This document shows positions 1,720 to 62,836 of a stretch of 64,000 nucleotides of DNA, in pieces (the stretch's first letter is position 1; the number at the start of each line of letters is the position of its first letter). The notes below the pieces were generated by a model that made no database searches, had not been told where the DNA came from, and saw only the letters and a program-made list of their open reading frames with translations. The position numbers and the translations under genes are program-made. The DNA comes from Bugula neritina (taxonomy: Eukaryota; Animalia; Bryozoa). The DNA is taken from assembly GCA_964035545.1 (NCBI GenBank), contig OZ037772.1, positions 12,460,818 to 12,524,817 on the forward strand. Reading direction: 5' to 3'.

Positions 1720-3630
1720 ATGGCTACAGCAGGTTCTGGGCAACTCTGTGCCGACAGAGAGTCATCTTATCCGTCACTGGAATATCTCAGGAATTCCAGC
1801 TCTATCTCAATAGGTCCATCATTCTTTAGGGGTAATAAATTCTTGCTACTTGTGTCGAATGACTCAGTTACTCACTGCTGTCCTCATGACAAGCACTCAA
1901 GCGCTGACCTCGTTATCAGAGACAGAGATCACGCCAACGTCAGGTTCTGTATTGGTGGAGCTGCTTTGGCCTTACCCACCATTAGAGCCTACATTCAGCA
2001 TAAAACAAGCAAAATTGGAAAAATTGTAAGTGGAAAGGTGTTTGTTAATGGAGCAAGTGGAGAGAGTGCCGGCACTTTTACACAGGAACTCACCGTACAA
2101 GATCAATATAAATACAGGTATGTTGACGAGGGAAGTAAACAGGAGCAAGCTGGAATCCTGGTTACCGATGGCTTACTGACTATAAACATGGAAGTTAGTC
2201 TGTCAACATCTATTAAAGCCTTAATCATATCCTACGGCGTGATGCTGGCCATGTCAAAGCATAAGGAGATGGTTGTGAACTTTCTAGGATCGGTGCCCGA
2301 GATCACTAAGAAGCTGGGTACTATTACCAACCAGTGCCAACCACTTCCGGTTTTTGAATGCGGTAATCCGAGGTTTGCAAGTTTCAACATACCGAAAACG
2401 GAGCAGATGAAAATTAGGCTGTACCAGAAGAACAAAGCTCACACTAAATATTCGTTTGTTTTGATGGATGCTAAGAACAATAATGCAGTGTGTATGACTT
2501 TGGTTTACTGCCTTGATAGCAACAGGTTGGAGTTTGTAGAGCCATTTGGCTCTGTAGCATACCATGCAGTTGGTTTGAGTAGCTTATATCAAAAGTTGCA
2601 GTTATTTTCAAGTCCGATAGGAGAATGTTGTGGCGAGATTGAACCAATCAGTCGACGAGAAAGACGATGTGGACAGTCTTATGTATTTCATATGACTGAT
2701 GAACCGGACAACCACCCAAACAAAACGCTTACCTGCTTTGTTTCGGAAAAACTCGAATACTGCAGGAATCTGAAAATAGTTAATAGGGACGATGAAAGTA
2801 TATTAACTTTTAACATCAGTCGTTTAGAAATTGATTTGAACATGTATGCCTTTTTGCCGCATTCCGAGAAGCTAATAGCTATAGCGTTTGTATTAAGACT
2901 GTTGGTGCGACTTATAGATCATCACTATGAACTTTTTTGTCCAGAAATGAGGCTTTATAGAAAAAATTACTTTTCTAAACGGCAACCTATACCAGTGGAG
3001 GCTTCCAATACCAATTACGAATCGATAATGTGTAGCAAGTTTTGGATCTGCTTGAGGGGTTCAGCTATGAACTTAAATGAACGAGTAATATTTTTAGACG
3101 CGATTCGCCCGGGAGCTGAGGCCAACCCTTTAATGCTTAAAGTGAGGTGTAAGTTTTACCCTAACATGGTGGACATTAACACCGCAGAGGTTTTACTCAC
3201 GACTGGTGCTATCGTAGTTCTCATCGAATACTCAGCCGATGGTCAGTGCTCAAGGGTGAGGAGCAATAAATTTTCTTCACAGATGATTGGTACACTAAAT
3301 GGAGACAAGGTGAACAATGGAACAGGTGCGCAATTGGCACAAGTTTATGAGATAAAGCGACCATGCCGGGTGTATAGTGGAAAGACAATCACAACATTTG
3401 AAGGTCACAATTCAGAGGGCAAAATATTTACCATTAACATAAGCAATAGCCTGGATACGGTGTCACTATCAACTGACAAGAATGCTGGGTGGAAAATGAA
3501 CATACTGGCACTCGCCTTTGCAATAAGAGCCTGTTTCCAAACATACAAACTCCAACAATATGCTTTACCGCACGTCCCGAGTTTTCCAGCCGTCGAAGAT
3601 TTAGATGACAGTGAATGTGAAGAATTGTAG
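1720..3630 (+). CDS. Intronless 636-aa protein with three predicted scramblase/tubby-like beta-barrel domains (copy A)
   Basis: Uninterrupted 636-codon ORF conserved with three paralogs in the window. N-terminal PSLEYL and SLSTSIKALIISYG resemble the scramblase motifs PGLEYL and DLDVKMKAVMIGA. Hydrophobic helices recur at ~165-178, ~383-397 and ~592-605. The ORF is solid; the fold is inference. Confidence 0.85.
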   Translation: MATAGSGQLCADRESSYPSLEYLRNSSSISIGPSFFRGNKFLLLVSNDSVTHCCPHDKHSSADLVIRDRDHANVRFCIGGAALALPTIRAYIQHKTSKIGKIVSGKVFVNGASGESAGTFTQELTVQDQYKYRYVDEGSKQEQAGILVTDGLLTINMEVSLSTSIKALIISYGVMLAMSKHKEMVVNFLGSVPEITKKLGTITNQCQPLPVFECGNPRFASFNIPKTEQMKIRLYQKNKAHTKYSFVLMDAKNNNAVCMTLVYCLDSNRLEFVEPFGSVAYHAVGLSSLYQKLQLFSSPIGECCGEIEPISRRERRCGQSYVFHMTDEPDNHPNKTLTCFVSEKLEYCRNLKIVNRDDESILTFNISRLEIDLNMYAFLPHSEKLIAIAFVLRLLVRLIDHHYELFCPEMRLYRKNYFSKRQPIPVEASNTNYESIMCSKFWICLRGSAMNLNERVIFLDAIRPGAEANPLMLKVRCKFYPNMVDINTAEVLLTTGAIVVLIEYSADGQCSRVRSNKFSSQMIGTLNGDKVNNGTGAQLAQVYEIKRPCRVYSGKTITTFEGHNSEGKIFTINISNSLDTVSLSTDKNAGWKMNILALAFAIRACFQTYKLQQYALPHVPSFPAVEDLDDSECEEL

Positions 3631-4231: not shown

Positions 4232-6142
4232 ATGGCTACAGCAGGTTCTGGGCAGCTCTGTACCAACAGAGAGTCATCTTATCCGTCACTGGAATATCTC
4301 AGGAATTCCAGCTCTATCTCAATAGGTCCATCGTTTTTCAATGGTAATAAATTCTTGCTACTTGTGTCGAATGACTCAGTTACTCACTGCTGTCCCCACG
4401 ACAAGCACTCAAGCGCCGACCTAGTTATCAGAGACAGAGAACACGCCAATGTCAGGTTTTGTATTGGTGGAGCTGCTTTGGCCTTACCCACCATTAGAGC
4501 CTACATTCAGCATAAAACAAGCAAAATTGGGAAAATTGTAAGTGGAAAGGTGTTTGTTAATAGAGCAAGTGGAGAGAGTGCCGGCACTTTTACACAAGAA
4601 CTCACCGTACAAGATCAATATAAATACAGGTATGTTGACGAGGGAAGTAAACAGGAGCAAGCGGGAATCCTGGTTACCGATGGTTTACTGACTATAAACA
4701 TGGAAGTTAGTCTGTCAACATCTATTAAAGCCTTAATTATATCCTACGGCGTGATGCTAGCCATGTCAAAGCATAAGGAGATGGTTGTGAACTTTCTAGG
4801 ATCGGTGCCCGAGATCACTAAGAAGCTGGGTACTATCACCAACCAGTGCCAACCACTTCCGGTTTTTGAATGCGGTAATCCGAGATTTGCAAGTTTCAAC
4901 ATACCGAAAACAGAGCAGATGAAAATAAGGTTGTATCAGAAAAATAAAGTTTGCACTAAATATTCGTTTGTCTTGATGGATGCTAAAAACAACAATGAAG
5001 TGTGTATGACTTTGGTTTACGACTTTGATAGCAACAGGTTAGAGTTTGTAGAACCATTTGGCTCTGTAACGCACCATGCAGTCGGTTTAGGGGGCTTGAA
5101 TCAAAAGTTGCAGTTGTTTTCTAGTCCGATAGGAGAATGTTGTGGCGAGATTGAACCAATCAGTCTACAAGAAAGACGTTGTGGACAGTCTTATGTATTT
5201 GATATGACTGATAAACCCGACAACCACCCAAACAAAACACTTACCTGCTTTGTTTCGGAGAAACTCGACTGCACTCATAGTCTAAAAATAGTTAACAGGG
5301 ACGATGAAAGTATATTAACTTTTAACGTCAGCCGCTTAGAAGTTAGCTTAAATATGTATGCCTTTTTGTCGCCTTCTGTGAAGCTATTACCTATAGCGTT
5401 TGTATTAAGAATGTTGGTGCGACTTATAGATAGCAACTATGAACTGTTTTGTCCAGGCATGAAACGTTATAGGAAGAATTATTTTTCTAAACGGCAACTA
5501 CCATCAGTGGAAACATTCAACACCAACTACGAATCGATAATGTGTAAGGTATTTTGGGTCTGCCTGAGGGGTTCAGCTATGAACTTAAATGAGCGAGTAA
5601 TATTTTTAGACTTGATACACCCTGGAGTTGAGGCCAACTCTTTAATGCTCAAAGTGAGGTGTAAGTTTTACCCTAACATGGTGGACATTAACACCGCAGA
5701 AGTTTTACTCACAACTGGTGCTATGGTAGTTCTCATCGAATACTCAGCCGATGGTCAGTGTTCAAGGGTGAGGAGCAATAAATTATCTTCGCAGATTATT
5801 GGTACACTAAATGGAGACAAATTGAATGATGGAACAGGTACGCAATTGGCACAAGTTTACGAGATGCAGCGACAATGCCGAGTGAATAGTGGGAGAACAA
5901 TCACAAACTTCGAAGGTCACAATTCAGAAGGCAAAATATTTACCATTAACATAAGCAAAAGCTTGGATACGGTGTCACTATCAACTGACAGGAATGCTGG
6001 GTTTTTAATGAACACACTGGCGCTTGCCTTTACAATCAGAACCTGTTTCCAAACATACAAACTCCAACAATATGCTTTACCGCACGTCCCGAGTTTTCCA
6101 GCTGTCGAAGATTTAGATGACAGTGAATGCGAAGAGTCTTAG
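4232..6142 (+). CDS. Intronless 636-aa paralog (copy B), tandem duplicate of 1720-3630
   Basis: Same length, no indels, about 70 amino-acid differences from copy A by manual count. The ~60 nt before the ATG are nearly identical in both copies. Confidence 0.85.
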   Translation: MATAGSGQLCTNRESSYPSLEYLRNSSSISIGPSFFNGNKFLLLVSNDSVTHCCPHDKHSSADLVIRDREHANVRFCIGGAALALPTIRAYIQHKTSKIGKIVSGKVFVNRASGESAGTFTQELTVQDQYKYRYVDEGSKQEQAGILVTDGLLTINMEVSLSTSIKALIISYGVMLAMSKHKEMVVNFLGSVPEITKKLGTITNQCQPLPVFECGNPRFASFNIPKTEQMKIRLYQKNKVCTKYSFVLMDAKNNNEVCMTLVYDFDSNRLEFVEPFGSVTHHAVGLGGLNQKLQLFSSPIGECCGEIEPISLQERRCGQSYVFDMTDKPDNHPNKTLTCFVSEKLDCTHSLKIVNRDDESILTFNVSRLEVSLNMYAFLSPSVKLLPIAFVLRMLVRLIDSNYELFCPGMKRYRKNYFSKRQLPSVETFNTNYESIMCKVFWVCLRGSAMNLNERVIFLDLIHPGVEANSLMLKVRCKFYPNMVDINTAEVLLTTGAMVVLIEYSADGQCSRVRSNKLSSQIIGTLNGDKLNDGTGTQLAQVYEMQRQCRVNSGRTITNFEGHNSEGKIFTINISKSLDTVSLSTDRNAGFLMNTLALAFTIRTCFQTYKLQQYALPHVPSFPAVEDLDDSECEES

Positions 6143-34678: not shown

Positions 34679-34876
34679 TTTTAGGAGTCATCTCCCATGA
34701 ATAAACTTTTCTACTTAAACACACTTTTTTATTTGATGCAAAGTTTTTTATATGAATTTTTAATAATGGTTTTTTTTTATATTATATTATAAATGTTTTG
34801 TTCTAAATTTTTATGTTAAGATGCAATATTTAGTTTTCAAAATATTAATAACACTCACTTTAAAGCAAACCTAAAA
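34679..34876 (+). promoter_or_regulatory. Putative snRNA-type promoter module (distal SPH-like motif plus proximal block); homologous modules at 36190-36389, 36789-36986, 37648-37845, 38173-38371 and 38794-38992
   Basis: Distal TTTAG(G/T)AGTT(A/G)TCTCCCATG with TCTCC at 34691, 36201, 36801, 37660, 38185, 38806. Proximal TTTTAGC..ATAAA...AT(A/G)ACACAT...TAT.TAAACCTAAAA with its ACAC 160, 163, 160, 160, 161, 161 bp downstream. The repeated motifs are observed; promoter function is inferred. Confidence 0.55.
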
Positions 34877-34889
34877 TTATAAATTTCTT

Positions 34890-35074
34890 GTACGCATTCA
34901 ATCGGTACCAGTTTTGCCAATGAATTACATATTTAAATATTTCAAAATATTTTTTCCGGGGCTACGAATAGCTCCAATACGCCGGTACGATAACACGCCT
35001 CACCCCCCTAAATGAGTCTAGAGACGTGGTACCAGGGCTTTGCTCTAGGACTGTTGCTAGAAGCAGTGTAGAGT
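34890..35074 (+). ncRNA. Putative structured small RNA, cassette A
   Basis: U-tract, then GGGGCTA-cgaa-TAGCTCC (34958-34975), bulged stem GGTAC/CACGCCTC...GAGACGTG/GTACC (34984-35033), and GCTCTA..ACTGTT/AGCAGT..TAGAGT (35042-35074). Ends are estimates. Confidence 0.5.
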
Positions 35075-36402
35075 AAGGTTGAAATGAAAATAAGGCATCA
35101 GTAAAATTTGCAATTTTAATATAGCTGTAGATTTTATGGCTATAATTTCAGAGCTGATGGAGTATATAAGATCACAAATTATAAACAACTGGTTTTGAAG
35201 TTTCTTACTGACTTTAATGCCCAATTTCCAAATATTCAATTGACAGGTGGCTACTTCAGCCGCCAGTAAGATGTGTTGACAGTTAACTGGATACAATGTA
35301 TTATACTTATCATATACACATTGGCACAAAGTAATTCATTGTATACATAATATTATACATAGTGAATAAAATATATAATGTAGAGTCTAGACTCTAGAGT
35401 CTGACTTAGTACCATAGCATCTTTTCTGTCACACAGATTACATATGTCATATGACAATACATATAGTTTTTTATACGACTATATATAGTTTTATATATGA
35501 CTATATAAAGGTCTCTTGACAGGTCTATGTATAGATAAATATCCCTTGTAGGTATAGCTATACTATATTGTCTATTAAACATTTGAGCCTTCCTTAATGT
35601 CAGGCAATGCATTATATTTGCACTTCACCGATCAGAACTCTGTGCTGTCAAATACTAAGATGTACGTCTACATGGATATATATATTTGTAAATTCCCACT
35701 ACTGCTCATATTTGTGGAGTTGTCATACTTGAAGTATACTCACTTACTTGGGACTGGGTACTCATTGAAATATTATGTTGTATTCTTTTTCAAGTTTTTG
35801 CTTTCGTTTTATGCTAATCATTTAAAGCACTAATATATGAACATGAAGATCACAAACATTTTGTGTAAATTGAAGCTTTGATTTCAATAAATTCAGTAAA
35901 TTTACCATTTCTTGTTGAAGTTTTACTTTTTAATAGAATTACTGTATTTCTCTACAGAGTATGTTTCGAATTCTTAAGAATCAATACCCAACAGTTACTG
36001 CAGGCTGCCTGCATCTTTTGTAGAATGTTATATAAAAAGACATCCAAAATTTGTGGTTTTTACTATAATTCATATATGTGTGTGCAAAGTAACTTTGCTT
36101 GTTATGCCTTAAAGAGCCATGTAAATTCAGCCCTGGTATAGACTAAAGAGTATAAACAGTTCTGTTGCATGGACTCACAGTTGAGTGTCTTTAGTAGTTA
36201 TCTCCTATGAATAAATTATTTTATGAAAACCTATAACTTATTTTAAAATGCATGTATAACATTTCAGGTTGTTTAAAATTATTAATAGCGTAATCTATCA
36301 AAGTTTTATTTTAGCTAATAAATATTATTGTAACTGTGTTTTGTAGCCAATAAAGTATAAATAACACCTAGTAATACGTAAACTTAAAACTAATACTGAC
36401 CA

Positions 36403-36572
36403 GCTACAAGCATGGTATAATCCTCTTGCCACTGGAAAAATGTTATATTTATAGTATCTGGAATATGCTGTATTCAGCCAGCTCAATGAGTAAATTGCTA
36501 ATACCCCGCAAGCAAATGATTACGCCGCAGGTTGCAAGGTATGTGTTAGATGCGTTATGCAACTTATTTGCT
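36403..36572 (+). ncRNA. Putative structured small RNA, cassette B
   Basis: TATCTGGA, then GCTG-tatt-CAGC (36467-36478), then bulged stem AGCAAAT/AGGTTGCA...TGCAACTT/ATTTGCT (36511-36572). Confidence 0.45.
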
Positions 36573-37002
36573 AGGAAAGTGTTCCAAAGTAAATCTACAT
36601 GCCTAATTTTTCATTTCAAGTTACAATATTAGGATTAAAAGTCAAACATCGTGGGACTTATTTCAGTTTTTTCAAATAAATTTACTATTATCTTTGAAGG
36701 TTTTATGTTTTTAGCTATTACCACTTTTGTTTTGGTTTTGTTTAACATTATAATTACACCCTTAGTAATAGAATCTCGAGTATCCCAGTTTTAGTAGTTG
36801 TCTCCCATGGGTCAAATATTTAACAAAACCGTCAAATTATTTTAATGCAAATAATATGTGTAGTATTTTAAACAATTCAAATATTTTTAATAGCAAAGTT
36901 TAAAAGTTTACTTCAGTATTTGTTTTCTATAATTATAATTTCAGTAATAAAATATAAGTGACACATGTTATTATGTGAACCTACAACTTATAGAAATTAA
37001 TT

Positions 37003-37175
37003 GCAACGGACTCGATAAATCACAATGCTAAACATTGCTAATATAGGCGTAGAGTCTACACTACCTAATACTATTTGGAGCGGACTGTGTCAGTCTGTAA
37101 ATTACAGTGAAGCTAAATTTGCTAATCCCACACTATAATGCATAAAGTATAGGCTACAATTGGAAGCATTTACAG
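37003..37175 (+). ncRNA. Putative structured small RNA, cassette C
   Basis: TAGG.GTAG/CTAC..CCTA hairpin, TATTTGGAG, CGGACTG-tgt-CAGTCTG (37081-37097), then CTGTAAAT...ATTTACAG enclosing CTATA/TATAG. Confidence 0.5.
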
Positions 37176-37848
37176 GTTTATTGCATTCTTCTTATGTAAT
37201 ATATATTAGTATTATTTAGATGATGGATATATGTGCTGTTGAACATTTTGTGAACTTCTATTTTATTGTTTCTTTTATTAAACTATTTTACTAGAAAGAG
37301 AATAAGAAATTTTCGGATATAGTTATGAAATGCTCTATAGCTAGTTAAAATACAACAAGCTTGTAATTTACTACAATTCAGTAAACTTGATGCTACATGT
37401 TTGGGCTGTAAACATGTTTAAGTTATGTTTATTGTTCTTATTGATTTGCAATCTCATCTCTTAGAATTATAGAGTAGTGACTAGTATCCTTATTTTGGGC
37501 TAGCCGTTAATCAGTTTAGTAGGTATTTCTTATTAATAAAGTTATATATTATCTATAGTATAGGTATATAACTTGAAACAAACGCAATACTAGAGGTCCT
37601 ATACCATTTGACTTTGAGCATCATTATTTCCGATCAATGGTAGCCAATTCTAGAAGTTATCTCCCATGACTAAATAATTCAGTGAAAACTTCTGAGTAAT
37701 TTACCCCGAAATGCATGTGTAACTTTAAAGCTATTTAAATATGTTTAACTGCAGACTTTAAAATTTATTCTAATTGTTGAAGTCTGTAACTATAGTTTTT
37801 AGCCACGAAAAGATAAATGACACATAATATTATATAAACCTAAAATAA

Positions 37849-38005
37849 ATAATTTACAGACATGGACAGAGTTGGTTCACTGTAAATTATATTGAGATAG
37901 AGAATGTTATATTGGAACATTTTTTGGAGTGAGCTGGTGTCAGCTCTCGTAACCAAGCTAAGACATGCATGTGCACACTGTATACACGGTATATGTAAAT
38001 GAGAG
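37849..38005 (+). ncRNA. Putative structured small RNA, cassette D
   Basis: ATAATTTACAG/CTGTAAATTAT inverted repeat, Sm-consensus-like ATTTTTTGGAG, GAGCTG-gtgt-CAGCTC (37931-37946), then G.U-rich stem CTCTCGT/GCATGTGC...GTATATGT/ATGAGAG. Confidence 0.55.
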
Positions 38006-38384
38006 TTCTCTACTAAATCTATGTTCAGTAATTAGTTAAAATTATCAAACTGGTTTTTGCAAATAAGCGCATGGGGTGTATATGTTGTAGCTTTTATATT
38101 ACGTAATACTTGTTATTTCATCTGTATTAAACTTGAAACAGAGAAACAAAAAAGCTAATAGCCATTAAATAGTTTTAGTAGTTATCTCCCATGAACAAAA
38201 TATTTTGTCAAAAACCCATCTATAATCGTATGGGAAATGTGTATATATTTTTGAAACTGTTTAAATTTGTAAGAGCAACTAGTAACATCTTTTCATAATT
38301 ATAAATTTTATATATTCACTATGTTTTAGCTGATAAATATACATAACACATATTATTATTTAAAACTAAAAATGTAAATATGAT

Positions 38385-38523
38385 GCAACATGAGCGTTTC
38401 AATCATGTAAACGTTGAATCCAACCTTTTTTGACAACATATCTTAATATTATTTGGAATGGGCTGGCCACAGCCCATGTTGTGATGACATTAGTAATTCA
38501 GAGGTGTTAGCAAATGTTGCAAT
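38385..38523 (+). ncRNA. Putative structured small RNA, cassette E
   Basis: ATTATTTGGA, ATGGGCTG-gcca-CAGCCCAT (38458-38477), then G.U-rich stem GTTGTGAT/GACATT...GGTGTT/GTTGCAAT. Confidence 0.55.
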
Positions 38524-39003
38524 ACATATAGAAATTTAAAAATCTATAAATGCCTCACATGTATTTAGTAAGTGCCCCATAGAGAATGGAATATCAGCAG
38601 CAGTATTACGATCTTAATATTTGTTATAATAATAATGTATGAATATATATATAAAGTAATTGGAGAATTCGCCATTCCAACATAATATGCACATAGCTTT
38701 TATATTACGTAATACTTGTGATTTCATCTATATTAAACTGAAATTAAACATGCAGCAAGAGAGAAATAAAAAGGGCCAGTAGCCATTAAATAGTTTTAGG
38801 AGTTATCTCCCATTAACAACATATTTTGTTAAAAATCTGTATATTATCATATGTGAAATGGATATATAATTTTTAAATTGTTTAAATTTGTAAACATAAC
38901 TAACAAAATCTTTTCGCAGTTGTAAATTATATATTTTTAATATCTTTTAGCCGATAAATATACATAACACATATTATTATTTAAAACTAAAACATTATTG
39001 ATA

Positions 39004-39121
39004 AGGCAACTAGCTTGCCTCCCCTTCTTAACACTTTATGCGCTATAAAGCTATTATTTGGACTGGGCTAATGTTAGCCCTTGGTTGATTAATATTATTC
39101 CTCTATACCTCTAATATCAAT
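39004..39121 (+). ncRNA. Putative structured small RNA, cassette F
   Basis: AGGCAA/TTGCCT and CTTTAT/ATAAAG hairpins, ATTATTTGGA, GGGCTA-atgt-TAGCCC (39065-39080), then a weaker AT-rich stem. Confidence 0.55.
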
Positions 39122-39586: not shown

Positions 39587-41389
39587 TCACTCTGTGAGTA
39601 TTCTTCCGTAGTAGTTGGCAATTTGAGGGATGGCAAACTCTTGGCTACACGACCCAAGGTGCTTCTCTAATGTCAAGGTCATAATGCACATGATTTCCTC
39701 GCCGGTACAGGTTTTACTGAGACTGGTTCGCACCGCTGCACTTTGCTGCTCTGACGCCTCATTTCTGTTGATCTCAGCTATCACTTTGTTCTGGGAATTC
39801 TCAACCTCAAGCACGTCTAGAATGTTGCCTGGAGTCGTCTGCCCACACGGAGAGTACGTGGTCTGGTGGAAAGTAACAACTATTTGGCAGTTTCTCCGTG
39901 CGAACCCGTCTTCATACTTGAATAAGGAACTGGCATTGACTGCTGCCGGCTTCACAGAGAGAGCAGCATCTTGCAGAAGGTTGGTTATGGTGAACAAGTT
40001 GCGACCGCTCGGCAGCTTTACTGTTACCTCCCCCTTAGAGGCAGCAACCCGATACTCTGCCACCATCATAAGCAGACCTTTCTGGGCATCTAAGATGTCA
40101 ATAAACTGAGTTCCCATGACTCTGTTCTCAGCTGCTAGCCTCACAACCATGTGACGCCCTCGCAGCCCAGTGATCACTTCAAACGCCGCCTCACTAGAGG
40201 GCGCCAGTAGCGGCGTGCTTTCACTCCAGCCGTCTGCGAGGTAGCAGGTGGGAACCGCCATGGCCGGTACATCCGAGCTGCACTCACCTGCCTGGTGTGC
40301 GCTGTACATGATAAATACTATAAGCAGTGCGTACTCACTCTGATTGGCTCTAGCAAATATCTGAATGCTAACTCTCTCGCTGTCGCTAGTAGCAAGGGCT
40401 GCTACATTTTCACAGCTGTCACCATGAGAAACAATTCTGAGACGTTTCTGACCGCTGTTAGTGCATAGAAACATTCTCTTTTCAGTTTTCAGAATCATGG
40501 TATCTTGACCGCAGTCGGGGGAGTTCTCTATCATCCCCACAGCTATGAGGTTAGCCTTAGCGAACAGGTAGGTGGAGTTAGAGTCGGGGGGTCCGGTTGT
40601 CGTGTAGTACTGTGTGATACCAGACCTGTCTATCATCTCCATCTGTCCAGAGTGTAAAGTGTAGCTGAGGGAACACTTTATCAAGTTATCATCACCAGGC
40701 TCCATTAAGGTGTAAGTCATGTTGCTACCATCCATGGTGCGAGTGTAGGGTATTAGCAACATGGTTGTGTTGTTTCGGAATGCTAGCGGTGCAGCCGTAC
40801 TTATAGGCTTGCCTGACTTCTCTGTACTCTGTCTGTGGGAGCTGTAGCATTGTGATGCCACAATCCTGTGACACAGCACGCTCTGTAGCTTTGTCAGTGC
40901 AACCTGAATGCCGTAGGATAAGATCAGCGTCTTGAGTTCCGGTAAACCCATTACCTTTTCGGTGAAGTGGAAGATTAGCACGTCGTTGGTGTAAGTCATG
41001 GAGCCAAAATCAATATTTCTCAGGCGCACGTTATACTGCAGACCGTCTCCATAGTCATCAATAAACTGACTCATTGCCTTTGGACTTGCAAAGTTTTGGC
41101 GCGCAAAGTACGCCGCGTCATTAATAACTGAGCCAATGGGGTTGTGGATTGATTCATAGACGTCGATGCGGCCATCTTCAACTTCGGCTCCTCTGATACA
41201 GAATCTGACCGCATGGTGCTCTCTGTCCTTTACTACCAGGTCACTGGTCCCGTGCTCTCTCTGACACATGTCAACTGCATTGTCACTCACCATCATAAAC
41301 AGGTTATCACCTGAGAAATGAGGTCGCAACTCCACGACGGAAATGCGACGCAAGTATTCCAAAGTAGGAAACATTGGCTGGGTAGCCAT
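39587..41389 (-). CDS. Intronless 600-aa distant paralog of the triple scramblase/tubby-like family
   Basis: FPTLEYLR vs YPSLEYLR; SDLVVKDREHHAVRFCI vs ADLVIRDREHANVRFCI; LKTLILSYGI vs IKALIISYGV. Three units, each ending in a hydrophobic helix. Confidence 0.85.
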   Translation of the reverse strand: MATQPMFPTLEYLRRISVVELRPHFSGDNLFMMVSDNAVDMCQREHGTSDLVVKDREHHAVRFCIRGAEVEDGRIDVYESIHNPIGSVINDAAYFARQNFASPKAMSQFIDDYGDGLQYNVRLRNIDFGSMTYTNDVLIFHFTEKVMGLPELKTLILSYGIQVALTKLQSVLCHRIVASQCYSSHRQSTEKSGKPISTAAPLAFRNNTTMLLIPYTRTMDGSNMTYTLMEPGDDNLIKCSLSYTLHSGQMEMIDRSGITQYYTTTGPPDSNSTYLFAKANLIAVGMIENSPDCGQDTMILKTEKRMFLCTNSGQKRLRIVSHGDSCENVAALATSDSERVSIQIFARANQSEYALLIVFIMYSAHQAGECSSDVPAMAVPTCYLADGWSESTPLLAPSSEAAFEVITGLRGRHMVVRLAAENRVMGTQFIDILDAQKGLLMMVAEYRVAASKGEVTVKLPSGRNLFTITNLLQDAALSVKPAAVNASSLFKYEDGFARRNCQIVVTFHQTTYSPCGQTTPGNILDVLEVENSQNKVIAEINRNEASEQQSAAVRTSLSKTCTGEEIMCIMTLTLEKHLGSCSQEFAIPQIANYYGRILTE

Positions 41390-41955
41390 TTTAACCTATT
41401 CCAGGTTTTAGTAATTGTTTTTTGATAGAATATGCATTTTTGTTGAAAAAAAGTTATTTTCTTCTAGAATCTTATAATAAATTAACATTGCATTAGTCAA
41501 ATTATTTAAATATTTCCTTCATTCATTACTGCATAGTTTATTTTATACATAAACAATTTATTTATCAATATAACGGTTGTTGGCATGTTGTTTCACATTT
41601 TGTTCTTAAGCTTTTATTTGTTGATGTTCAATTGTCTTGAAGAATATATTTTTCTTCTACTAGCTGTCTAGTCCTTTGCTCCTCCTTTTTATTTCTAGCT
41701 GCATTTAAAATACTAACAAATTTGTGTATTGATTTATCAACTTGGGCAATATGAATATTTAGGAGTTGTCTCTCTTAGCAAAATGTTAATACTAAAATCT
41801 TTAAATAAATATTTATTTTTTACTGTTTTTTTAAATTTCCAATGTTTCAAAAATTTAATTATTTTAATTTACTTATAAAAATATAATATATTTTATATTT
41901 CTTTGCAAATTACTACATTAAATAATTTATTACACTTTTATAGTAAAATATGATC

Positions 41956-42062
41956 ATACTACTTACTATCGCACGCGCCAGTCGTATGGCCACGTTTATA
42001 GTCTCACATCCCTGTGAGTTTTTTTATGATGGAACTTTTGCAGGGAGGCACTTCAGCCTCCT
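41956..42062 (+). ncRNA. Putative small RNA with U1-like topology, cassette G
   Basis: Upstream TTTAGGAGTTGTCTCTC (TCTCTC at 41769) with ACAC at +163. Then ACTTAC, closing helix CTATCG/TGATGG, hairpins GCCA/TGGC and CTCACA/TGTGAG, AACTTTTG, GGAGGC-acttca-GCCTCC, followed by GTTTATTGTTAAA. Confidence 0.5.
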
Positions 42063-59735: not shown

Positions 59736-61220
59736 ACTGGCTCACCATGGACCACCTCTTCTTGTTTCTAACTCTCAGTTTATCTTTCAGATGAACTACC
59801 AGTATACTGCCTCCCGGGAGACGAAAGGTCAGCTGACCTCCATAAGGGGCGGGCAACTTCTCTGGCATCTCCATAATTTCTGAAACAACAAGAGTATGCG
59901 GAGCTTTTAGATCCATCAAGTCTTTAAAATTTTAATGTTTGGATGATGTGTTTAATCTTATCACTTTGAACATTGTTATAAATGTCCAGGACTGTGTTCA
60001 CAAGTATTCTAGAGGTTTTACTTGCAACAAATTTCTATTACAGGTGTCACAAAATAAATTGTATGCTATAAACTATATTTCTAGAGATGCTCTAGCAACA
60101 ACAAGGCACTATGAATATGTCTCTATCTTTAGAGTTGTACTATTTTTTTATTATATTATACTTCATAGTTGGTTTATATATCACTCAGGTCTGATATTTG
60201 CGTATTAATACAGGCAGCCAATGACTATTGTATCCTCACTAAAACACAATGATAATGTATTATTATACATCAACAGTAATAAAAGGTGAACTTAATGGTT
60301 ACTTTCTTTAGTACTAGAAAAAGCTGTTGCAGTTAAAGACTGGTAGAGTTCCATGTACTTGTTCATGTCTTCAGTTACATTAGTCAAAATGAGTGAATAA
60401 AAGGTGCCCAACTGAATTAATGTAAAATGTTGATAATAAAGTCTCAAACAACACTTTTCTGAGCTTTACTGTTGTCTGACCACACCAGCACTGTCTACAG
60501 CCCGACTGTAACTTACTTTTTAATTTTTTTTTATTCCGTAAGTAAGCATCGGAAATGCTCATGTCTCAAGACTATCACTGCTGGTTCTGTTCTTACTCTA
60601 TACAAGGATAGTTACTCAGTGATTGACTGGTAAACAATGCTAGCAACTAGAATGCCAATGTCATAATTGCATTACAATTTATAATAGTATTAAATAAAGA
60701 TATAATTTAACTTAATGAACTTCTTTGCTTTGGTCATCTTATTGCATGTCTTATTAAACTAGTTAAAATTGACGAGCTTTGATGTTTGTTGTTTTCTTTA
60801 TATTATATTATTGTGATTATTATATTATTATTTTATACCTTATTACACAGTATAAATATGCACACATAATCGCTTTCTCAGCATTACAGAGTCTGTCTTG
60901 ATTTTTAAAGATTACTAAAGCAATAAATAGTATATTTTCAATAGCTATCTTACAGTCGCAAGTGTTTTTAATTCAATTATTTGAAAATAAAAATAAGTAC
61001 CAACAAATTTACATTTAGGGTTTATCTCCCTTGGTACAGTGATCGCATTTTATAGAGAATCTTATTATAATAACACACAAGAACGAGAATGTTTTAATTT
61101 TAAATTTTAATATAATTGGTGAAGTTATTTAAAATAATGTATTACACTATATTTACTAATTCTACTGCATTATAGAATTTAAAATACCTTGCACACCGTT
61201 TACTAATCACTCACGATTTA

Positions 61221-61425
61221 ACTAGTAGCGATGCGACATGAGTGTAGAGATAGAGTGTGTTAATAGCGCACAATTACATACACACCAATCGACTAGCGAA
61301 CCTTATTGTTGCTTAAAAGGTAAATATCGGACTAAGTTGTTCAGTCAACTTACTAATGCATCTGAGGTTATTTAGTAGAATCGTACCTAGTGTCGCAAGA
61401 CGCACCCTTGGCCTACGGTCCAGAC
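61221..61425 (+). ncRNA. Putative structured small RNA, cassette H
   Basis: TTTAGGGTTTATCTCCC (TCTCCC at 61025) ~200 bp upstream. Nested stems CTAGT/ACTAG, CGAT/ATCG, GTGTA/TACAC; ACCTT/AAGGT; AATATCGGA; TAAGTTG/CAACTTA (61333-61352); GNRA hairpin GTGTC-gcaa-GACGC (61390-61403). Confidence 0.45.
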
Positions 61426-62644
61426 AGTGTATGTCACTGCTGGTACTGTCATAATGTAAAGCAAGTAAATTACAATAGTCGCTGCCGACTAGAATGTATG
61501 GCATCGTCTCACTATTAGAAAATTGATACAAAAAGAGTTGCTTGCCCTTGTGAGAAAGCAATGCATACTTCTTGTTACAGGTGTATTCAACATTAGAATT
61601 AGGTGACCGAGTCCAGCTATTTGCGATTCTTGATAAAATAGACACCCAACACTGAATATATATTTTGAAAACCATCTGTGACAGTTTGACTCGAAATGCT
61701 CTGAATCAAAAACACGATCTCACTTGGCCCATACAGAACATGCTTCACTCACTAATTATGTGTAAACATAGAAATAGATCTTCAATGCAGTTATCAGCTG
61801 TAATCTACACTTCGCAATATAAAACTTCGGAAAAAGCGCTTTCTATGTTACTATTGAACTCACCAAATCAACTAAAGCGGTCTACAGTACAGATATTGCT
61901 GTAACTAAGAATATTTCTTCACAGGTGAAATCAAATATAATGTAATGATGCACAAAGCATAGTCTTTATGTTTCTAATAGATGTGCAAAAGCAATTATGT
62001 TGACATAATAATGTTGAGAATTTTTTCAAATTAAAGTTAAAATTGTATATTTTACAACTATACGGACAAAAAATTAAGCAAAATGTCTTGAAGTGTCATC
62101 TTGAAACACTCAATATTTTAAATTTTAGTTTTTAAATACACAAATGGATTTTTCTCTATATTGATGCTAAAATTCAATTTATTTATTTTGTAAACCTGAT
62201 GTTTTTACAACAGAAAAACAGTTTAGGAAAGAGTATTAAGTAAAATGCCTTTTTTCACAATAAAGAGATATGGAAGTTGGATTGTCTTATGCGACTATGT
62301 GTATTTCCAACTGAGAGAAAACAGTTAGGTTCTTCTGATACAGTTGTAAAAGTAGCCCAACGAAATTGACAATTTCACTGAGGTTGATTTACCAGTTCAC
62401 TTTTTTATCTCATATATTATTATAATGATAGCGTATTTGAAAAATTAGGATTTATCTCCCCATACGTCTATTTAAATTTTATTATCTTATGATATTTAAA
62501 AAATAAACATAATATACAGACACAAACAAAGTTTAAAACAATAAATAAACTTTAAAATTAAAATAATGTTTTAAAATGTAAATAATTTTATAAATACAGC
62601 GGTTTTGAAATTTACACACTTGAAATTATATTTTATTATTTTGA

Positions 62645-62836
62645 CTAGTCATCTGTGAAAACGTAGAGTGTTCAGAGTGTGAAATTTTAGCACATGATTT
62701 CTGCAGCACAATTCTGCTGATGAACATCAGTGGCTGGAGCGAACCCCTGAGTTGTTCAGGGGTTCGCCCTAGCATCTGAGAGAATATGCAATGTCTGTGC
62801 CTACAAGCATTGACTAATGTGCTTGTTGCAGAATGC
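62645..62836 (+). ncRNA. Putative structured small RNA, cassette I
   Basis: TTAGGATTTATCTCCC (TCTCCC at 62455) with ACAC at +159. GTGTTCA/TGAACAT enclosing two hairpins; GCTGGA; perfect 12-bp stem GCGAACCCCTGA/TCAGGGGTTCGC (62739-62767); bulged stem TCTGTG/ACAAGCA...TGCTTGT/TGCAGA. Confidence 0.5.

Follow-up and report, generated by a model that had tools for sequence, protein, structure and literature searches.

Seven cassettes with snRNA-type promoters in Bugula neritina: probably a lineage-specific family of small nuclear RNAs

The cassettes and their promoters

The 64,000-nucleotide (nt) stretch of Bugula neritina contig OZ037772.1 analyzed here, hereafter the window, carries seven short cassettes on its plus strand. 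They were named C1 to C7, names that are distinct from those of contigs C1, C3, C7, C8, and C244 of the genome assembly. Each cassette is arranged, from 5′ to 3′, as a distal element, an AT-rich spacer, a proximal block with the word ACAC, a copy-specific segment of 30–55 nt, a U-rich site with UUUG(G/C) at its end, and a G+C-rich hairpin of 6–8 base pairs (bp). An earlier note on this DNA had proposed six cassettes, within 34679–39121, as candidate small nuclear RNA (snRNA) genes; the seventh, C7, was absent from it and lies beyond the adjacent open reading frame (ORF). Short-read contigs from a public run, possibly the assembly's own source, span the cluster with one substitution, indicating that the cluster is not an assembly artefact. 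The features are listed below in window coordinates, with RNA lengths counted to the hairpin end and scores taken from the promoter profile described after the list.

34681–34877, plus strand: C1 promoter; distal element 34681–34699, AT-rich spacer, ACAC 34851; score 22.8; conserved in the sister lineage (L077)
34910–34975, plus strand: C1 predicted RNA, ~65 nt; start placed by promoter spacing; U-tract 34950–34957; hairpin arms 34959–34964 and 34969–34974
36191–36390, plus strand: C2 promoter; distal element 36191–36209; ACAC 36364; score 22.7
36423–36481, plus strand: C2 predicted RNA, ~58 nt; degraded U-rich site and hairpin (4 bp remain); the sister-lineage hairpin is intact with 7 bp
36791–36987, plus strand: C3 promoter; distal element 36791–36809; ACAC 36961; score 27.3
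37020–37097, plus strand: C3 predicted RNA, ~77 nt; Sm-like site 37072–37079; hairpin arms 37082–37087 and 37091–37096
37650–37846, plus strand: C4 promoter; distal element 37650–37668; ACAC 37820; score 20.4
37879–37947, plus strand: C4 predicted RNA, ~68 nt; Sm-like site 37921–37928 (the sole AU4-6G); hairpin arms 37931–37936 and 37941–37946
38175–38372, plus strand: C5 promoter; distal element 38175–38193; ACAC 38346; score 26.6
38405–38477, plus strand: C5 predicted RNA, ~71 nt; Sm-like site 38450–38457; hairpin arms 38460–38465 and 38470–38475
38796–38993, plus strand: C6 promoter; distal element 38796–38814; ACAC 38967; score 27.9
39026–39081, plus strand: C6 predicted RNA, ~55 nt; Sm-like site 39055–39062; hairpin arms 39065–39070 and 39075–39080; site and stem the same in L076–L079
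41759–41958, plus strand: C7 promoter; distal element 41759–41777; ACAC 41932; score 33.4
41992–42062, plus strand: C7 predicted RNA, ~71 nt; 5′ hairpin ~42003–42018, U-run, Sm-like site 42035–42042, 3′ hairpin 42043–42062; z −2.45

The distal motif was found in six plus-strand copies, at 34686, 36196, 36796, 37655, 38180, and 38801, against 0.81 expected by chance, a count reached in 0 of 100 shuffles. The six cassettes of the earlier note are thus real; its exact distal string is present only in C3, C4, and C5, the others being one base off. The ACAC word lies 165–168 nt past the first base of the motif, which is 160–163 nt past TCTCC as the note had stated, and the same spacing separates the two elements in U1.

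Whether the species' own snRNA promoters carry both motifs had been set beforehand as a test, and those of U1, U2, and U5 do. In the U1 genes of the Bugula genome, the distal motif falls between −220 and −228, with ACAC at −58. The motif is inverted in four of five U2 genes, near −245, and ACAC of the U2 genes is at about −59; in the U5 genes, ACAC occupies −56 to −58. The orientation independence of the distal motif fits a distal enhancer element, and the motif may correspond to the SPH/ZNF143 element, which it resembles. The ACAC block is common to all seven cassettes and to U1, U2, and U5, and the predicted cassette starts fall ~58 nt past ACAC. A two-part promoter profile, trained solely on the U1, U2, and U5 promoters of this genome, was then used to score the plus strand of the window. 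The top nine sites, scoring 20.4–38.7, were the seven cassettes and two unrelated sites at ~61.2 and 62.6 kb. The cassettes scored 20.4–33.4, compared to shuffled-window maxima of 16.9 ± 1.9 (highest 21.1), such that six of the seven exceeded every shuffle and C4 (20.4) was borderline; a looser promoter pattern search was uninformative. As judged from their sequence, then, the cassettes carry snRNA-type promoters of the host species.

For promoters with a proximal sequence element, a TATA box directs the choice of polymerase III (PMC6004067). No TATA box is common to the cassettes; in C1, a TATA-like word near −31 falls in the least conserved region (69%). Furthermore, C1, C4, C5, and C7 contain internal U6–U8 runs, 5′ of conserved sequence, which would stop polymerase III. 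The missing shared TATA box and these runs suggest that the cassettes are transcribed by polymerase II.

Neither the proximal block of the cassettes, nor their combination of site and hairpin, nor their DNA as such occurred at any other locus; C7 is single-copy in the genome, and the window has no tandem array. The cassettes are thus not a high-copy repeat, transposon, or satellite; distant family members may exist elsewhere in the genome.

Hairpin, U-rich site, and conservation of the predicted RNAs

The compensatory changes that the earlier note had seen in the first hairpin were borne out. Among 12 sequences of C1–C6, 91.7% of cells were paired, two-sided changes occurred in 5 of 7 pairs, and 0 of 500 shuffles reached the score; relatedness, which the test ignores, inflates this score, and the structure was taken from the same sequences. 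More informative were the orthologs, which showed further stem changes that keep pairing, namely A-U to G-C in C4 and both G.U to A-U and G-C to G.U in C3; in C5, one closing pair is broken. The U-rich site followed by a hairpin was confirmed for C1 and C3–C6 and not for C2, whose hairpin is degenerate here and intact in the sister lineage. C2 is probably decaying in this genome, and in the sister lineage 13 nt of C6 are duplicated.

The comparison genome (L077, GCA_010799875.2) belongs to a sister lineage with ~94% coding and 75–83% non-coding identity, and it holds all seven cassettes in the same order. Pooled ortholog identity was 93% for the distal element, 91% for the proximal block, 91% for the U-rich site, 89% for the stem arms, and 85% for the 5′ part, compared to 69% for the 32 nt before the start, 70% for the 50 nt past the hairpin, and a background of 75% (83% without gaps). 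The conservation of the promoter elements and of C7 was significant against both backgrounds. Across 71 nt, C7 and its ortholog are the same but for one substitution and an extra U, with flanks matching at 20 of 32 positions upstream and 22 of 50 downstream. Its conservation begins at the predicted start and ends after the hairpin, which matches the predicted RNA borders, and by these identities the strongest constraint in the cluster is on C7. Taken together, the covariation and the cross-lineage conservation support structured RNA genes.

A second, longer bulged stem and the size of 120–190 nt, both given in the earlier note, were not supported, and the size is now put at ~55–80 nt. The 70 nt past the hairpin folded like shuffles (z −1.7 to +1.3 in 14 sequences from both lineages), so the second stem was rejected; the identity of 70% in the 50 nt past the hairpin, below background, agrees with this. 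C1 and C5, in which the 50 nt downstream of the hairpin are 84–86% conserved, could conceivably have a longer RNA.

The 5′ parts behaved differently among copies. The promoters of C5 and C6 share 81% identity over 242 nt, and the 5′ RNA parts of the two are unalignable; the C5 5′ part is nonetheless identical at 43 of 45 positions between lineages. Such fast replacement after duplication followed by stasis suggests that the 5′ part holds a copy-specific function.

Identity tests and proposed interpretation

No significant match came from Rfam when the window, the cluster, and C7 were scanned. The earlier note had recognized none of U1, U2, U4, U5, U6, U7, U11, and U12 in the cassettes. U1, U2, U4, U5, U11, U12, and U4atac score above cut-off elsewhere in the genome. 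No similarity of cassettes to U1, U2, or U5 was consistent across lineages, and telomerase-template words were looked for and none turned up. In both lineages, the 5′ part of C7 can form a G.U-rich pairing with U5 (−27 kcal/mol, p ~0.01, 1 of 21 comparisons), against a strand that U5 pairs internally; this gives a weak lead to U5 ancestry. A literature search, in a library without most subscription journals, turned up nothing on these RNAs or on trans-splicing in bryozoans. The cassettes are therefore probably an orphan set of small nuclear RNAs, new to the known families.

With regard to Sm binding, the cassettes have a 3′ stem-loop beside a single-stranded U-rich site, degraded in C2 of this genome. 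U1 and U5 of the same genome likewise place a U-rich site, with UUUGG at its end, immediately 5′ of the 3′ hairpin, and the promoter elements and their spacing are those of U1, U2, and U5. Since spliced-leader (SL) RNAs are known to have degenerate Sm sites (PMC7986045), Sm binding at the U-rich sites of the cassettes is plausible.

We propose, with a probability of about 0.6, that the cassettes encode capped RNAs of 55–80 nt, transcribed by polymerase II through SNAPc, that form Sm-loaded accessory nuclear ribonucleoproteins (snRNPs) with specificity provided by their 5′ parts. The seven genes would have arisen when an snRNA-type transcription unit was duplicated locally. By established snRNA biology, SNAPc would recruit RNA polymerase II, the capped RNA would end just past the hairpin, an Sm ring would load on the U-rich site, and the particle would return to the nucleus. 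The common 3′ module would serve as a chassis for stability and assembly, with the 5′ part acting as a base-pairing guide or a protein-binding surface, which is the most speculative step, and the resulting accessory snRNPs would act on pre-mRNA processing. In sum, this would probably be a single-locus, lineage-specific, polymerase II-transcribed snRNA family of the Sm class.

Several results weigh against this proposal, besides the inflation of the covariation score. None of the 14 cassette sequences has a strict canonical Sm site (RAU4-6G); AU4-6G occurs in C4 only, the other cassettes having AU3G or A/G-N-U4-6G variants, and the Sm sites of U1, U2, and U5 of the same genome are all AU5G. For this reason, the family is not classed as a proven Sm-class member. 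The conservation of the U-rich site and the stems was significant with gaps counted and borderline against the gap-free 83% background (p 0.07–0.08), and that of the pooled 5′ parts showed no excess over the gap-free background (p 0.28). No consistent pairing of cassettes with U1, U2, U5, or histone elements was found as a target. Moreover, conservation was followed within Bugula only; homologues of the neighbouring ORF pointed to no cassette-bearing locus outside Bugula, and metagenome scans gave no relatives.

The Sm-class snRNA set of animals is generally regarded as nearly fixed; lineage-specific additions are few, among them LU in flies, and SmY and SL RNAs, which occur in nematodes and certain other phyla. 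The closest parallel is Drosophila LU (Like-U, CR43708), which is also an orphan, lineage-restricted RNA with snRNA promoter elements, an Sm site, a covarying 3′ stem-loop, and no known function (PMC4053861). LU is a single 116-nt gene restricted to one fly group, with proven association with Sm and trimethylguanosine (PMC4053861), whereas the cassettes are seven paralogues of 55–80 nt with unalignable 5′ parts, known from DNA alone; no homology is implied. If the proposal is true, new snRNPs would arise by duplication of the promoter and 3′ module with a swapped 5′ domain. The promoter model would also be a homology-free finder for further snRNA-type genes in bryozoans, including the missing U7. 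A bolder form, rather doubtful at present, is that the family is an expanding series of U7-sized guide snRNPs, in which a fixed Sm-site and hairpin chassis carries exchangeable 5′ antisense domains and each copy has its own pre-mRNA targets, within a 600-kb region rich in orphan snRNA-type genes; this would possibly be a bryozoan RNA-processing pathway so far undescribed.

SNAPc-driven small RNAs are not always snRNAs, as nematodes use SNAPc for precursors of Piwi-interacting RNAs. The cassettes could then be SNAPc-driven RNAs outside the Sm class, in which the U-tract and hairpin would form a 3′-end or stability signal, or precursors of shorter RNAs. The non-canonical Sm sites agree with this, as do at least 13 such promoters at 12.27–12.87 Mb of contig C8, some with unrelated downstream sequence. 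However, the hairpin covaries, and a UUUGG-ending U-rich site before a 3′ hairpin is the U1 and U5 arrangement in this genome; we thus regard this explanation as unlikely. More doubtful still is that snRNA-type promoters were duplicated with RNA bodies that mostly drift and do not function, such that C7 alone or none works. The degraded C2, the C6 duplication, and the 5′ parts that do not rise above the gap-free background are all expected of drift; against it, all seven promoters are kept in both lineages, the stem changes in C3 and C4 keep pairing, and the bodies of C5 and C7 are near-invariant.

A divergent U7 snRNA, or a U7-derived family for histone mRNA 3′ processing, would share with the cassettes the size and the three-part layout of U7 (RF00066): a single-stranded 5′ part, an Sm site, and one hairpin. 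In the genome, 37 histone stem-loops scored above cut-off and are accompanied by a clear, AAAGAGTTGTTC-like downstream element, yet searches of the genome by the U7 model and by histone-element-derived patterns remained at chance level, with no U7 above cut-off or promoter-bearing. A UCUAG-type Sm site is defining for U7 (PMC12360213), and the U7-type AAUUUGUCUAG site is in no cassette. When pairing was tested with 27–29 histone elements, cassettes gave −4.5 to −7.7 kcal/mol, compared to −11.8 kcal/mol for the control, and were at background except C4. C4 of this genome pairs over 13 bp with one histone element, in a pairing that extends into the U-tract and is absent from the ortholog. U7 identity was therefore rejected for want of both UCUAG and conserved histone pairing, and a U7 origin is improbable, given also a better U7-like candidate elsewhere. 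This best U7-like word of the genome (G000:C1:35346776-35346796) has a histone-element complement followed by ATTTGTCT, with no ACAC at the expected distance. The histone downstream elements (L052–L071) are apparently bipartite, with AAAG(A/T)G, a variable spacer, and GTTC.

Least probable of all is that bryozoans have a trans-splicing system, so far undescribed, which the cassettes serve as SL RNAs or SmY-like helpers. The cassettes resemble SL RNAs in being short and clustered with degenerate Sm sites (PMC7986045), and C7 has a 5′ hairpin that covers GUGAGU, located 22 nt from the start and 21 nt short of the U-rich site; C7 also fits AC?T4-6G. Nevertheless, no leader exon with a GU donor 20–60 nt before the Sm site is common to the copies, on which ground SL identity was rejected: the C7 candidate donor has no G at −1, C1, C5, and C6 have no GU donor at least 10 nt from the start, and C7 is single-copy. 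A metagenome scan for the leader returned one chance match, and the literature search found no paper on bryozoan trans-splicing. Nematode SmY RNAs likewise form a small family of several genes; they are short, are restricted to their clade, and combine an Sm site with a 3′ stem-loop (PMC11229312). They differ in their canonical Sm site, conserved first stem-loop, and role in SL1 trans-splicing; SmY identity was rejected since the cassettes share no first stem-loop and have no Rfam match.

Neighbouring promoters and genes

Two further snRNA-type promoters were located on the plus strand of the window, at 62445–62790 (ACAC 62616, score 38.7, the best in the window) and 61015–61370 (ACAC 61193, score 28.7). 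Strong hairpins and C/D-box-like words (TGATGA, CTGA) mark the RNA predicted from ~62674, which has no significant Rfam match and is unrelated to the cassettes; the copy at 61251 resembles a diverged paralogue of it. The promoters at 12.27–12.87 Mb of contig C8 lie within ~600 kb, none at a known snRNA match: they are at 12274330 and 12275225, in the seven cassettes, at the two sites at the window end, and at 12620394 and 12730910, with an extra distal motif at 12873940. Similar promoters were observed on other contigs (C3:2098842, C3:18809396, and C7:2447674). One locus (L016:1505-1800, G000:C8:12730912) has a full promoter followed by a sequence that is like the U1 5′ end in its first bases only, with no Rfam match. 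Among the spliceosomal snRNA loci, a U2 gene (L024) is broken just past the branch-point region, and a highly divergent U1 without a cassette-type promoter (L029), on the small contig C244, is probably another organism's.

The orphan ORF next to the cluster (39587–41389, minus strand) is 95–96% identical to Bugula neritina proteins, including KAF6038391.1, which places the window in the B. neritina group. Together with the ORFs at 6–713, 1720–3630, and 4232–6142, it belongs to one Pfam-less, fast-evolving family of intronless ORFs of 600–640 amino acids, with tandem expansion in Bugula. Between C1 and C2 lies a dispersed repeat of ~150 bp (35964–36135), with at least 39 other copies at 71–81% identity.

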